Assembly: GCF_006345805.1 (NCBI RefSeq)
Contig: NC_043002.1
Span: 96,844,001 to 96,908,000, forward strand
DNA: 64,000 nt
Direction: 5' to 3'
From: Octopus sinensis
Lineage: Eukaryota
The notes beneath the pieces are model-generated. The model worked only from the letters and a program-made list of their open reading frames with translations, was not told where the DNA came from and did no database searches. A program made the position numbers and the translations under genes. Below are positions 35,294-50,187 of this stretch, in pieces; positions within the stretch are counted from its first letter, which is position 1; every line of letters begins with the position of its first letter.

Positions 35294-35372
35294 ATGCATT
35301 TATCTCCGATACTCTTGTTTCCAGTTGTTGCCCTGACCGTGACGATTATTTTGGATAATACTAACACAGATA
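35294..35372 (+). CDS. Coding exon 1: signal-peptide-like MHLSPILLFPVVALTVTIILDNTNTD
   Basis: Acceptor tttttcttacAG, ATG as first codon, hydrophobic core, donor GTAAGT at 35373, 79 bp ending in phase 1. Confidence 0.75.
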
Positions 35373-36299
35373 GTAAGTTTTCATATTCATAAATTCCTGC
35401 ACGGGTATGAGGCTCTGAGATCCAAACCCCCTCTCCTCTCGACACCGTCATTATTTCAATTTTCCAAATAATGTCGTAAATACATTTCTAAAATCTCTTT
35501 TGGAGCTCACTATCACACTTGTGTAAATTTCCATAAGTCTGAAGTCGTTTTAGAGGGTAATCTGATTTCGATCTTAAAAGGAAGTCTGTAAAATGGATTT
35601 TTAGGCCGATTCAGTAGAAGTACATCGGTGTGTTGTGTGGACAGTTATTATTTCTTTATAAGATGTAACTTCACACCAAAAGGTAATTTATGGGACACAA
35701 GAAAACATTTACAAGTAAGCCAGATAACATAACGTTGAAGGTTTCTGAAATTTAAAGAAGGACATTGTTTTACATATGCACATTGTCCTTTCTGCTGTCT
35801 TTTAGAGCTGTTACACTCACTTATAGTAATATATATCTACATATATAGGCACACACTACAAATTTGTCTCGTTTTCCTTTATGTCCATAAATATCTATTA
35901 TAAGTCATACGATGATATTGAACTTTGAATTCCTAATTCATAGTCCATTAAACATATACATACATACACACACACACATATATATACATACATATATACA
36001 TTCATACATGCATACCTACATATATAAGTATGTGTATATATATATATATATATATATATATATATATATATATATATACATATATATATATATATATATA
36101 TATATATATATATATAATATATATATATATATATATATACATATGTATACACACACACATACATATATATGTGTATATATATATATACTTACATATGTAT
36201 GTATATATATATATATATATATATATATATATAATATATATATATATATATATATATATATATATGCATATATATATATATGTATATATATATGTATAT

Positions 36300-37410
36300 T
36301 GTTACGCCGCCACTCAGGCCGAAGGCCTTCCGATTCCACCACGGGGCCTAAGTCGCGACGATGACGCTCAGTAAACCGGAAATCCACCACGGGAAGGAGG
36401 GAAGGCGGCGAACGCAGCCAGGAACCAACACAACAACAAAAGAAAGGAGACATACAGCGGAAGTTGCGTAATTCAGCAATTTTCTTTTTAACAAAACCAA
36501 AGCATTCCAAAACAAAGGTTGACAAATCATGTACAGAGTTCGAAGAACAAATCATTTGCATTTAAACATAATACAGAGTTCGAAAAACAAATCATTTAAC
36601 ATTTGACACAATGCAGTTCGATTATTCAAGACAAATCATTTTACATTTAACACAAGGTTCACAATCAACAGTCTCTTAGAGCTCCACTTTCATCTTTTTT
36701 TTTAACACGACAGTTCTCAAAAAGTTCCTTCTGCTTTTCTTTTAAAAACATTTCCAAGTTCTTTTTTTCTTCCTTTTCTTTTCTTTTAAAAACAGTCAAC
36801 AACACGCTCTTTTATCTTTTCAACGGTTACGCTAGAGCCTCTCTCTTTTTTTCATTTCAACAACACATCGTCGCTTCTCTTTTTTTTTCGAAGAACATTT
36901 ACATTTAAAAATTTAGAGTTCAAAACATGCAGAAAAACAACATTACCAGAACATTTGTTTCTTAAATTCGCGTCCGCAACAATTTTAACTTCACAAACTC
37001 CCACTACAACAACTTGCCTGGCCGCTCGTTGTCATCTTTCCCACTACCCCGCCATCCCCAACTACACCTGTATGTCTCTGGCCGTCATCATCTCTAACTC
37101 ACTCCCTGGTCCCGGTCTCCGCTCACACTGACCGTCTGTCTTTCTCTCAGTGACTGACTCTCGCCAACCGAACGCTTTAACTTAATGCTATCCGTATATA
37201 TAACGTCGTCCCAGTATTTTTATTCTTTTTAACTTTCCGTTACCGTGTGGGGTCATAGAACAGTTTCAAGGCCATTAATAATCGTGCTCTTTGACAGGAC
37301 AAAGGAAATACCATTGTCCTAAACAACTGGAGCGCCGGTTCGATTCCAACTAATGGAACAAAGGGCATAATGTTTTTTTGTTCGTTTACATTTTCCTTGC
37401 GTCTGTAACA
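36300..37410. mobile_element. Solo LTR (1111 bp), intronic
   Basis: TGTTAC...GTAACA termini, ATAT 4-bp TSD, inside a (TA)n tract. Confidence 0.75.
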
Positions 37411-37526
37411 ATATAATATATATATATATATATATATATATATATACTAAATATCAGGGTAAGAAAATATAAAATTTTTTTTTACTACCAGTAGCCTAGC
37501 ATGTAGAAAAATTAGTCATAAAAATA

Positions 37527-38134
37527 GTGTACATTTAAATACATAAGAAGTAACCATCATAGGATACCTAGCACGCTAGAAGGAATGGCCAAAATCCAAA
37601 TCACTCTTAGGGATAAATTTCGAATGGAATGAATATAAAATCATTTACCATCTATCTGCTGGACCATGGTTTCTAGCACTATATTAGCAAATAAAATAAT
37701 TTGATAGGCGGAGCCTTCATCAACGGGTACGCTAAGATTAAACATAAAAATACGAGGCAATCTAGCATTTACCCCGTGCTTATAAATCATAATTTTTCAA
37801 ACCAACCGCGTAAGGGAATTTTTTATCAGCAGCAAATAAATAATGCCGGCGTTTCTTCGAAAAATTTCCAAAAATTATCAATTATTACTAAATATCACGG
37901 TGCCTCGTATTTATATGTTTGATATAAATGGCATACTGTTGATAAAGGCTCCGCCTAGCAAATTATCGTATTTGCTAATATAGAGCTACAAACCATGGCC
38001 CAAGAGATAGATGGTAAATGTTTTTATCTTTCTTTCCCTTCGAAATTTATCCCTAAGAGTGGTTTGGATTTTGGTTATTCCGTCTAACGTGCTAGGTATC
38101 CTATAATGGTTACTTCTTGTGTTTAAATGTACAC
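37527..38134. repeat. ~233-bp inverted repeat, intronic
   Basis: Arms 37527-37759 and 37901-38134. A related single copy lies at ~57620-57825. Degenerate TTGATGA-aggc-tcc-gcct motif in the arms. Confidence 0.85.
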
Positions 38135-38342
38135 TGTATTCATATGAATAATATACATACATACATACATATATATATATATATATATATATACGTATCT
38201 ATATGTATACGTATGCATGTATGTATGTGTGAGTACATATATATATATATATATAATGTATATATATGGTCGTCTCAAAGATTTTTAATATCCATTAACC
38301 ATGCAAATCATTATCTATATGTTGTGTTTTTATTGTTTGCAG

Positions 38343-38465
38343 ATTGTACTGGATGTTTCTACGATGGACATTGTTTTTGTTCAAATCAGGTTGGAATGTA
38401 TATGGGACAGCGTTCTTGTCAAATGTTGGAATGCAAAAAGCATCAACTTACAGTTCATGACATAT
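38343..38465 (+). CDS. Coding exon 2: Cys-rich module 1 (CTGCFYDGHCFCSNQVGMYMGQRSCQMLECKKHQLTVHDI)
   Basis: Acceptor tttttattgtttgcAG, donor GTAAGT at 38466, 123 bp, open phase 1-1 frame, 6 Cys. HC-x14-C-x4-C spacing is shared with the next exon. Confidence 0.8.
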
Positions 38466-47730: not shown

Positions 47731-48223
47731 TGATAGATGGGTAAAATGGAATATACGAGAAACTTTATTGTTCACAACAATCGTTTCGACTTATCCTGCA
47801 TTGATCTCTCATGAATGGAAAACTGTACAACCGGTTGTAGTGCATTCCTTGCTTCAGATACGTCTCGTCAGATGATGTTATAAGGTATAACTCATTAAAT
47901 AAACTGTTTCGCTCGATTTTAATGCAGCATGTTGTCAGTGACCGTAGGCTCAAGCCATTCGGCAGGAATGACGTGGAACAGATTTTGTTGCAATTTTACA
48001 GAGGAAGACAGGGAGTAATAAAGACAAATAATAAGAAAAATAAAACACAATAAAGTAAAACATTGTGTGCGTCAGAACCCAGATATAATTATTTCCGTAC
48101 CCAAACTTGCTGTCCTGCGTACACAGACACACACACGTGTGTGTGTGTGTGTTTGTGTCGCCACAACAGTGGTTCGGAAACTTGTCGGGTAGCGTGAATT
48201 ATTTCAACTACATATTGCCGATC

Positions 48224-48538
48224 TGGAGGCACAATGGCCCAGTGGTTAGGTCAGCGGACTCGCGGTCGGCAGATCGCAGTTTCGATTCCCGGATCGGGCG
48301 TTGTGCGTGTTTATTGAGCGAAAACACCTAAAGCTCCACGAGGCTCCGGCAGGGGTGCTGGCGACCCCTGTTGTACTCTTTCGCCCCAACTTTCTCTCAC
48401 TCTTTCTTCCTGTTTCGTGAGTAACGCTGCGATGGAGTGGCATCTCGTCCAGCTGGAGGGAACACATAAGACATAGAAACCGGGAAACCGGGCCCATGAG
48501 CCTGGCTAGGCTGGAAAAGGGCGCTTAAATAAAAAAAA
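48224..48538 (+). mobile_element. SINE family B, full length
   Basis: tRNA-like head, tail ...gggcccatgagcctggctaggct, A-run. Confidence 0.85.
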
Positions 48539-49665
48539 CATATTGCCGATTCGTCTTGATAAGACAACATTTGCATGGTTTGTTTTCCACGTTGATCTCT
48601 CTAAGCTTTTTCATCCTGAATGGTTTTGGCTCGAAACTGGTTGAATTAGCGAGAAATTCGAACATGTATAACTGGTGGAATAACCTTATGTACGCATGTT
48701 CACGAATATATGTATGTAAGTATATACGTGCGTACGTAACGTATGTATGTGTGTATGTAAATATGTATGTATGTATGCATGTATGTATGTATGCATGTAT
48801 GCACACACGCACGCAAATGTAGTATTAAATTAATTTGCCTTTCAAAGGCATATATATATATATACATATACATATATATATGTGTGTGTGTGTGTATGTA
48901 TATATACACATATACATATATATATATATATATATATACATATACATATATATATATGTGTGTGTGTGTGTGTGTGTATACACATATACATATATATATA
49001 TATATATATATATATACATATATACACACACATACATACACACACATACACACACATACACACACATGCATGTAGTGTGTGTGAGAGAGAGGAGAGACAG
49101 ATAAAGCGAAACGGCTGGGCGTGAGAAAGAGAGAGAGCACATATATCTTTTTAAAATTTACTCCTGTTAATCTACAAAAGTTTATTAACACATCTACTTA
49201 TTTCCATTTCTATATTCTTACCTATTTCGTTTACATACTTTCACAATTATATGCAAATAAGTATAGGTTTCGAGTGTTTATGGTTTGCTCCTGTGTATGT
49301 AGTATGCAGTTATGCGTGTATCGCACAAAGCTTTAAACGGGATGAAATATAATCACGATGTATCAGTCATATAGAATGGCATAAAACACTATTTTCGCAT
49401 TCCCGTTACTTTACATCTGCAACTACCTGCACACGTTTTCAAGTATATAACATAATGAATTTTTCTGGGTCTTTTCGTTTAAGTGCACGTCCTTCATTAT
49501 GAAACAAAATTCTGAAGGAAATAAAATGTATACATGTGTCTATTTACCATAAAACAGCTCTGCTGTCACGGTACACGAGATCAATTGACTGGCCTAATGA
49601 TATAAGCTCCTCACATTTTAACATATGAAATTTATTCGCAGCATATATACAGCATATTTACATAA

Positions 49666-49968
49666 TGTGGAGGCGCAATGGCCCAGTGGTTAGGGCAACG
49701 GACTTGCAGTCGGAGGATCGCGGTTTCGATTCCCAGACCGGGCGTTGTGTGTGTTTATTGAGCGAAAACACCTAAAGCTCCACGTGGCTCCGGCAGGGGG
49801 TAGCGGCGACCCCTGTTGTACTCTTTCGCCCCAACTTTCTCTCACTCTTTCTTCCTGTTTCTTGATCAACACTGCGATAGACTGGCGTCCCGCCCAGCTG
49901 GGGGGAACACATACGCCATAGAAACCGAAAACCGGGCCCATGAGTCTGGCTAGGCTTGAAATGGGCGA
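49666..49968 (+). mobile_element. SINE family B, full length
   Basis: Direct repeat of 48224-48538. Confidence 0.85.
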
Positions 49969-50119
49969 AATTCTAACTTCTATATTTACAGAACTAAAGC
50001 TCAGGCAATTCCTTTAGTCTGAACATACTGATAAAATTAGGGGGATCCTAACACCCTTAGGCCAATATGTTCGTCTCGCATTAAAACATTCATAAAAACG
50101 GAATTGTTTTATTTTACAG

Positions 50120-50187
50120 TTTGCTCAGTGGATCACCTCATCAGCAAAATGCTGAAGCTTTACCATCCGGAAATGAAATATTGTTAA
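50120..50187 (+). CDS. Terminal coding exon, cassette B: CSVDHLISKMLKLYHPEMKYC*
   Basis: Acceptor gttttattttacAG, phase-1 frame ending TGT TAA. Same frame and stop position in the paralog at 62520. Confidence 0.8.

Follow-up and report, generated by a model that had tools for sequence, protein, structure and literature searches.

Is there a gene in a stretch of octopus DNA crowded with microsatellites and transposon remnants and, if so, what kind of protein would it make? The question is raised by a 64,000-nucleotide (nt) segment of the Octopus sinensis genome (assembly GCF_006345805.1, contig NC_043002.1, positions 96,844,001 to 96,908,000 of the forward strand), the whole of which we call the window and in whose coordinates positions are given below. 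A preliminary description had proposed that a gene of four short exons for an unrecognised, histidine-rich secreted protein with 12 cysteines is hidden there among repeats. The best explanation overall, and in our view a very probable one, is a genuine unannotated protein-coding gene of the family represented by LOC128248178 of Octopus bimaculoides, with the last two coding exons present twice, as cassettes A and B. The epithet 'unrecognised' holds for this species and for the literature, but RefSeq already predicts LOC128248178, as an uncharacterised gene, in O. bimaculoides; what is new here is the definition of the family, the predicted tandem fold resembling fibronectin FnI modules and the duplicated 3' cassette.

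Gene model and its orthologue

Reading the four exon intervals from the window and joining them by script yields a coding sequence of 402 nt, which translates into a protein of 133 amino acids (aa) with 12 cysteines. The exons measure 79, 123, 132 and 68 nt and all three introns are in phase 1; the internal boundaries all follow the AG-exon-GT rule, with pyrimidine-rich acceptors and donors that read, in order, GTAAGT, GTAAGT and GTATGT. The earlier model of four canonically spliced phase-1 exons and 133 residues is thereby reproduced, and its boundaries coincide to the base with those of the O. bimaculoides orthologue discussed below. The motif HC-x14-C-x4-C-x2-[HN]-x-L, which had been noted for the two middle exons, is found a single time in each of exons 2 and 3. 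The N-terminus is hydrophobic (mean Kyte-Doolittle value 2.46 over residues 3-20), and the mature protein has a computed mass of about 12.6 kDa and a computed isoelectric point of 7.2-8.3. The gene is indeed hidden among repeats: in the window, which has a G+C content of 36%, microsatellites and transposon remnants are abundant, and the introns are full of them. Rfam and tRNA scans found no RNA genes in the window. The features of the locus, including those of cassette B, are the following.

35172-35293, + strand: promoter-proximal block with the TATA-like motif TATATAAAG (35252-35260, 42 nt 5' of the ATG); about 94% identical to O. bimaculoides
35294-35372, + strand: coding exon 1, 79 nt, with the ATG and a hydrophobic, signal-peptide-like N-terminus; donor GTAAGT from 35373; same length as O. 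bimaculoides exon 1
38343-38465, + strand: exon 2, 123 nt, phase 1-1; module 1 with six cysteines, C-x2-C-x5-C-x-C-x12-C-x4-C
46841-46972, + strand: exon 3 of cassette A, 132 nt, phase 1-1; module 2 with four cysteines, all kept; frame intact, AG/GT sites; 80% nt identity to O. bimaculoides exon 3
50120-50187, + strand: exon 4 of cassette A, 68 nt with the TAA stop counted; encodes the C-terminal tail and its two cysteines, the last of which is the final residue
50308-50313, + strand: candidate poly(A) signal, the first AATAAA after the cassette A stop codon
58122-58253, + strand: exon 3 of cassette B, 132 nt, phase 1-1; another intact exon for module 2, acceptor ttttcag, donor GTAAGT, four cysteines kept; 87% nt identity to O. 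bimaculoides exon 3
62520-62587, + strand: exon 4 of cassette B, 68 nt with the TAA stop counted; another intact exon for the tail, with two cysteines
62626-62631, + strand: AATAAA of cassette B, 39 nt past its stop codon; O. bimaculoides has one in the matching position

Does the model have a counterpart elsewhere? A search of 5.8 billion protein clusters returned a single match (E = 2e-57), XP_052825023.1, which is isoform X2 of LOC128248178 in O. bimaculoides. Both proteins are 133 aa long and align without a gap at 65% identity, with 12 of 12 cysteines kept, so that a homologue with the conserved cysteine spacing does exist in a related species; read through cassette B, the window protein is 70% identical to its counterpart. 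The coding exons of LOC128248178 (79, 123, 132 and 68 nt, phases 1, 1, 1) are identical in plan to the window model, and the locus itself (CM046606.1:107,213,973-107,251,579, 37.6 kb, here L001) is collinear with the window in exons and introns as well as in the DNA upstream, with an nt identity of about 83%; at another family locus, taken for calibration, O. sinensis and O. bimaculoides are 87.7% identical. The likeness thus covers the length of the protein, the four-exon phase-1 plan, the spacing of the 12 cysteines, the syntenic position, the hydrophobic leader and the richness in histidine. As judged from this agreement, the window gene is the orthologue of LOC128248178 in another, closely related octopus. 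The difference lies at the 3' end, where the fetched locus has one exon 3/4 cassette as against two in the window and is predicted to use other alternative 3' exons instead.

These alternatives belong to isoforms X1 (165 aa) and X3 (119 aa) of LOC128248178, in which additional exons, or exon 4 read in a different frame, are used and the final two cysteines are lost. Pieces tied to X1 and X3 lie at L001 23286-23309, 25072-25137 and 27503-27604. In the window, the region of cassette B (61271-61429 and 62512-62613) displays weak aa similarity of 40-51% to the X1-specific exon and a similarity of 71% to the alternative exon 4 frame, and cassette A gives weak matches to the same X1-specific pieces (40% and 56% identity, E 0.075 and 0.013).

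A duplicated 3' cassette

Searching the window by tblastn with its own protein and the O. bimaculoides isoforms reveals a second pair of exon 3-like and exon 4-like sequences at 58122-58253 and 62520-62587. The preliminary description had missed this pair; the exons that it proposed are intact, but its junctions 38465>46841 and 46972>50120 may be neither the sole nor the main ones. Cassette B has the exact lengths of 132 and 68 nt, AG/GT sites with the donor GTAAGT, open frames and all six cysteines. Together with its flanks it is collinear with L001 14970-28110 at 83-88% identity, whereas for cassette A (46714-50647) the identity to that segment is 77-80%, and over the C-terminal half of the protein the aa identity to O. 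bimaculoides is 74% for cassette B and 65% for cassette A. On this comparison cassette B, and not cassette A, is the positional orthologue of O. bimaculoides exons 3-4. Cassette A sits inside about 15 kb (40.5-55.5 kb) whose counterpart in intron 2 of O. bimaculoides is shorter than 1 kb; a zf-RVT retroelement remnant and a GIY-YIG ORF, described below, fall within the same 15 kb.

When did the cassette arise? The two copies share 75.5% of their nucleotides, in the flanks as well as in the exons, and this value lies below the 83-88% between cassette B and O. bimaculoides; by this rough clock the duplication therefore appears to predate the split of the species, and O. bimaculoides would either have lost cassette A or have none in the 37.6 kb fetched. 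Products made through A or B would have the leader and module 1 in common and, from module 2 to the end of the tail, differ at 41% of positions. The copies also differ in their signals: the AATAAA position common to cassette B and O. bimaculoides reads AATAAG in cassette A, where the next AATAAA comes 121 nt past the stop, and the cassette A donor GTATGT is slightly weaker than GTAAGT.

Exons 1 and 2 are not repeated between the cassettes: a tblastn search with 18 family proteins places exon 1-like and exon 2-like sequence at 35294 and 38343 only. Two weak tblastn matches were rejected as exons, the one at 55296-55412 for the stop codons within it and the one at 46360-46464 for its position within a dispersed repeat adjoining a microsatellite.

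Selection on the coding sequence

Which signs of selection does the gene bear? The conservation of exons relative to introns was dropped as evidence for a gene, since nt identity to O. bimaculoides (83.8% in exons, 82.4% in flanks and introns) fails to discriminate between them. The alignment has 0 gap columns in the exons, however, as against 331 in the flanks, and in the 402 bp of orthologous exons, for which the flank rate predicts 4.2 insertions or deletions, 0 are seen (Poisson P = 0.014); the corresponding probability for cassette A is 0.023. When the observed 65 substitutions are scattered at random in a neutral simulation scored for survival of the open reading frame (ORF) and the 12 cysteines, both survive in 0.035% of the simulations of the whole gene (P 0.00035), and the neutral probability of retaining frame and cysteines is 0.004 for cassette A and 0.035 for cassette B. 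The ratio of non-synonymous to synonymous substitution rates (dN/dS) relative to O. bimaculoides is 0.37 in the mature part of exon 2, 0.63 in cassette A and 0.65 in cassette B, and it reaches 0.94 between the two cassettes; the cassette values are not significantly below 1. Because nucleotide conservation and cassette dN/dS are uninformative, the case for selection rests on the open frame, the absence of indels, the retention of cysteines and the splice sites. The high dN/dS means that the protein is a fast-evolving one, and the comparison as a whole indicates rapid protein evolution under which the coding capacity stays protected.

The stretch of about 120 bp 5' of the ATG, which holds TATATAAAG, is about 94% identical to O. 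bimaculoides, compared with about 82-85% in the surrounding non-coding DNA. This block may be a conserved core promoter, in which case the 5' untranslated region would be very short. Exon 1 (35294-35372) displays about 15.5 non-synonymous and 0.5 synonymous changes relative to O. bimaculoides, which is unusual for a signal peptide, the numbers being too small for significance.

Alternative readings of the locus

Could there be no gene at all, only splice-like sites and open frames brought together by chance, or a pseudogene that is dead in this species? Exons that accumulate substitutions at the rate of introns are what one would expect in that case. The same doubt is fed by the cassette dN/dS values and by a collection of 15 billion proteins in which neither isoform of the window protein is present, and the gene is known here from genomic sequence and comparison alone; all these points weigh against a working gene. 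Chance or decay would, on the other hand, have to account for an exon structure identical to that of the independently predicted orthologue and of the mapped paralogues, for the survival of all 12 cysteines, for a joint neutral probability of about 5e-6 (0.00035 x 0.014), for the conserved promoter-proximal block and for family profile matches at E = 1e-19 to 1e-26. We consider the absence of a functional gene extremely unlikely, and the four-exon gene is almost certainly real.

If the gene is real, which 3' end would its transcript carry? That cassettes A and B serve as alternative 3' ends behind a single exon 1-2 pair is to us the likeliest reading, with about an even chance of being correct. 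It is rather unlikely, though well worth considering, that the transcript joins exon 2 to cassette B, as in O. bimaculoides, and that cassette A is a silent or decaying duplicate within intron 2. Such a state would agree with the collinearity of cassette B and its closer match to O. bimaculoides in DNA and protein, with the lack of a cassette A in the 37.6 kb of O. bimaculoides fetched, and with the weaker donor, the altered poly(A) signal and the dN/dS of cassette A. It agrees poorly with the fact that cassette A, although older than the species split, retains both ORFs, six cysteines, exact lengths and three splice sites, and that it lies upstream of B behind a good acceptor and so would be met first by the spliceosome. 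We think that cassette A is functional, because it has kept frames, cysteines, lengths and splice sites despite its age, an outcome whose neutral probability is about 0.004 for frame and cysteines and about 0.023 for the absence of indels. A and B might instead be two separate genes, with a second leader and module 1 exon, diverged past detection, at 50.7-58.1 kb driving B, and close tandem family genes do exist in O. bimaculoides, where LOC128248170 and LOC128248169 are about 8 kb apart. We hold this to be very unlikely, as tblastn with the 18 family proteins detects only one exon 1 and one exon 2, the lone weak match between the cassettes (55296-55412) holds stop codons, and the segment 55513-56683, just 5' of exon 3B, is collinear with O. 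bimaculoides intron 2.

A family of 12-cysteine proteins in Octopus

How far does the family extend? It was sought by an exhaustive HMMER search of 1.84 billion representatives, with a query profile made of the LOC128248178 orthologue and the per-exon window translations aligned beneath it, and then by a profile search of the 5.8-billion set. At least 11 loci were found in O. bimaculoides, all on one 117-Mb chromosome, along with a single protein from O. sinensis (LOC118763715) and another from O. vulgaris (CAI9723911.1); neither profile search returned family members outside Octopus. The O. bimaculoides paralogues are LOC128248170, LOC128248169, LOC128248167, LOC128248081, LOC128248058, LOC106872966, LOC106872050, LOC106869804, LOC106869796 and LOC106869794, and the four loci fetched from this species comprise one at 90.7 Mb, a pair separated by 8 kb at 106.76-106.78 Mb and one at 107.22 Mb. 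The family profile matches the paralogues at E 1e-11 to 1e-26 over positions 1-107, and the paralogue proteins match the window exons by tblastn. One profile match, to a bacterial repeat protein of 946 aa that is free of cysteine (P0012), was discarded as spurious.

The arrangement of cysteines is the most constant trait. Both isoforms of the window protein and 8 of the 13 full-length relatives have the spacing 2, 5, 1, 12, 4, 11, 6, 14, 4, 16, 19 with the last cysteine C-terminal, and the remaining 5 relatives depart from it by 1-5 residues in one or two loops. The four mapped paralogues have exons of 123, 132-135 and 68 nt in phase 1, and an exon 2 of 123 nt is found in all five mapped family genes. 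Exon lengths in the paralogues are as follows.

LOC128248170 (O. bimaculoides): 109, 123, 132 and 68 nt
LOC106869804 (O. bimaculoides): 73, 123, 132 and 68 nt
LOC118763715 (O. sinensis): 76, 123, 132 and 68 nt
LOC128248169 (O. bimaculoides): 36, 85, 123, 135 and 68 nt

Every full-length member aligned starts with a hydrophobic segment, and the leader of the window protein fits the earlier reading of a secreted product. The claim of histidine-richness is borne out as well, for the window gene and its orthologue: a histidine content of 8-10% is confined to the LOC128248178 orthologue group, as against 0-4.7% in the paralogues, and seven histidines are common to the cassette A form, the cassette B form and the O. 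bimaculoides orthologue. In LOC106869796 (216 aa) modules 1-2 are duplicated in tandem before the tail, and the first unit has 10 cysteines, as do the tail-less isoforms X1 and X3 of LOC128248178. Because such tail-less units have 10 cysteines, the two cysteines of the tail probably pair with each other.

All members are computer predictions named 'uncharacterized' or 'hypothetical', bar one automatic UniProt name. That name, 'UPAR/Ly6 domain-containing' for A0A0L8H3R2 (LOC106872966), looks like an annotation artefact, as the protein has no Pfam UPAR_LY6 match and no CC dipeptide. In the literature no paper mentions any of the identifiers searched (7 LOC identifiers, 6 accessions), and topical searches gave nothing relevant. 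Since O. bimaculoides has at least 11 predicted loci whereas O. sinensis and O. vulgaris have yielded a single protein apiece, the annotation of octopus genomes has probably overlooked members of the family. On present comparisons it appears as a fast-evolving family of proteins of about 130 aa that is so far restricted to Octopus and clustered on one chromosome.

Predicted fold

What might such a protein look like? The structure modelled was that of the O. bimaculoides orthologue in its mature form, whose identity to the two mature window isoforms is 68-75%. With 19 alignment rows AlphaFold2 gave a model with a predicted local distance difference test score (pLDDT) of 88.6 and a predicted template modelling score (pTM) of 0.71, and all five models reached at least 84.5. 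The model consists of two consecutive all-beta modules coincident with exons 2 and 3 and a short helix in the exon 4 tail. When it is compared with the PDB by Foldseek, the top nine matches are fibronectin FnI module pairs aligned across both modules (83-91 columns, probability 0.5-1.0), with the 8-9FnI pairs 3GXE and 3EJH, the 2-3FnI pairs 2CKU and 2CG6 and the 1-2FnI pair 1QGB among those matched. A first model built from 6 alignment rows was poor (pLDDT 54.9); single FnI modules of factor XII, tPA and fibronectin match it at about 1.9 Å over 40 residues, which is to be taken as a weak pointer only. The mature protein is predicted by the better model to fold as a tandem pair of FnI-like modules.

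Several observations count against this prediction. The model is that of the orthologue and not of the window protein itself, and its FnI matches are borderline, with E values of 0.011-0.23 and template modelling scores of 0.27-0.51. Aligned to each other as profiles by hhalign, modules 1 and 2 show no significant similarity (E = 0.16 over 8 columns); the cysteine pattern misfits FnI, and no sequence method ties the family to FnI. Pfam scans of the protein and 12 family members gave sub-threshold noise only (CxC6, zf-CW, Tryp_inh), and a sequence search of the PDB found only chance matches to SIR4 (E = 0.44) with the single protein and 0 matches at E <= 10 with the family profile. The proposal of a duplicated, FnI-like module is therefore supported as regards the predicted fold, where FnI pairs fill the first nine places, and unsupported by sequence, where Pfam, the PDB, patterns and hhalign all fail. 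The accompanying suggestion of a VWC-like protein is not supported: there is no Pfam VWC match, the VWC pattern is unmatched, a CC dipeptide is missing and no VWC structure appears in the top 50 fold matches. The CxC6 cysteine cluster of KDZ transposases (PF18721) was also set aside as a chance match to a cysteine-rich sequence, scoring 16.6 bits against a cut-off of 27.5 and giving any match in 2 of the 12 members.

How do the octopus proteins compare with known extracellular modules? FnI modules are extracellular and are typically encoded by a single phase-1 exon each; to our knowledge they are described only in chordates. With FnI pairs such as 3EJH, 3GXE, 2CKU and 2CG6 the octopus protein shares, in prediction, two small disulfide-braced beta modules, each made of a hairpin and a three-stranded sheet. 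It differs from them in that Pfam fn1 is unmatched at E <= 1-10 and so is the PROSITE-like FnI pattern, in the number of cysteines (6 + 4 as against 4 + 4 in FnI, where they pair 1-3 and 2-4), in their spacing, in the lack of a late C-x-C and in the extra helical tail with two cysteines. VWC domains, including the arthropod single-VWC proteins, are likewise small, secreted and cysteine-rich, the N-terminal VWC subdomain has an FnI-like fold, and the C-x2-(N/D)-G-x2-W of module 2 loosely recalls a VWC start; the C-C-x2-C of VWC is nonetheless absent, no octopus member having a CC dipeptide, and neither pattern nor Pfam model matches. Ly6/uPAR three-finger domains are small secreted beta-rich disulfide proteins of similar size. 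Pfam UPAR_LY6 is, however, unmatched at E <= 1 in the 12 members scanned, A0A0L8H3R2 included, the CC-x4-CN motif is absent and no three-finger structure occurs among the fold matches. The octopus protein, as modelled, looks like an FnI pair; we do not claim membership of the FnI family for it, and both homology and convergence are possible.

Possible mode of action and evolution

What could be the role of such a protein and of its two alternative ends? In the scheme that we propose, each coding exon contributes one structural unit, namely the leader, a predicted beta finger with six cysteines, a predicted finger with four, and a short helical tail closed by two. The leader would direct secretion, six disulfides would form, and the mature protein would serve as an extracellular binder. 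Through beta-strand addition, FnI pairs take hold of collagen, fibrin and bacterial adhesins, and by analogy an extended segment of a partner could perhaps dock along the edge strands of the octopus fingers; this seems to us the likeliest mode of binding, although we consider it doubtful. A single promoter with a shared leader and module 1 would serve two alternative ends composed of module 2 and tail, and a swap of this cassette would change the binding specificity. The seven conserved histidines allow the speculation that binding depends on metal or pH.

Since all introns are in phase 1, modules can be duplicated or swapped without a break of the frame, as shown by LOC106869796, and the family has grown by tandem duplication of genes, by duplication of modules and by duplication of cassettes. 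We can imagine, as a distinctly improbable extension of this scheme, that these tandem FnI-like finger proteins were invented in cephalopods, or diverged there to an extreme degree, and that the design of one module per phase-1 exon served to diversify their binding specificity by tandem gene duplication, by internal module duplication as in LOC106869796 and, in this species, by alternative use of two cassettes of module 2 and tail that diverged long ago and share a promoter and a module 1. If this were true, octopuses would possess a small combinatorial system of recognition or effector proteins for immunity, saliva or venom, or reproduction. Families of this kind are often venom, immune, reproductive or adhesive components in other animals, and the venom, immune or matrix roles suggested in the preliminary description would be candidates for the present protein. 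Lineage-specific families of secreted cysteine-rich proteins are common, and no general principle is changed by the present case. The locus illustrates that a gene missed by annotation can be recovered from raw sequence exactly to the base, and the data provide a first working description of an unnamed lineage-restricted family, with one module per phase-1 exon, a framework of 12 cysteines, a predicted finger fold and duplication of exons and cassettes. The family is a reasonable target for octopus tissue transcriptomics and proteomics.

Repeats and other elements of the window

Remnants of non-LTR-type (LTR, long terminal repeat) retroelements lie on the - strand at 40848-42355 and 26933-28611. 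The first is within intron 2, and its ORF 40848-41663 has a zf-RVT domain (E = 4e-7); ORF 26933-27388 of the second is 34% identical to the C-terminal part of ORF 40848-41663 (E = 1e-24). The second remnant belongs to a block of 8.8 kb (26001-34841), beginning some 450 bp 5' of the ATG, that the window has and O. bimaculoides lacks. An ORF of 256 aa at 51350-52120 on the + strand, between the two cassettes, has a GIY-YIG nuclease domain (E = 4e-7) and possibly comes from a Penelope-like element; tandem repeats lie nearby, with two copies of 102 bp at 52422-52626 and two of 145 bp at 55193-55481.

Intron 1 contains a foldback element (37501-38162), about 180 bp 5' of exon 2, with arms of about 225 nt (37501-37724 and 37938-38162) that are 81-88% complementary. 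O. bimaculoides has it at the corresponding site, L001 10590-11440 giving matches in both orientations. A dispersed repeat of about 150-230 bp that resembles a short interspersed element (SINE) occurs at 7210-7427, 11565-11746, 16560-16713, 21221-21433, 24652-24795 and 46348-46494; it resembles L001 2190-2421, and one of its copies lies just 5' of exon 3A.

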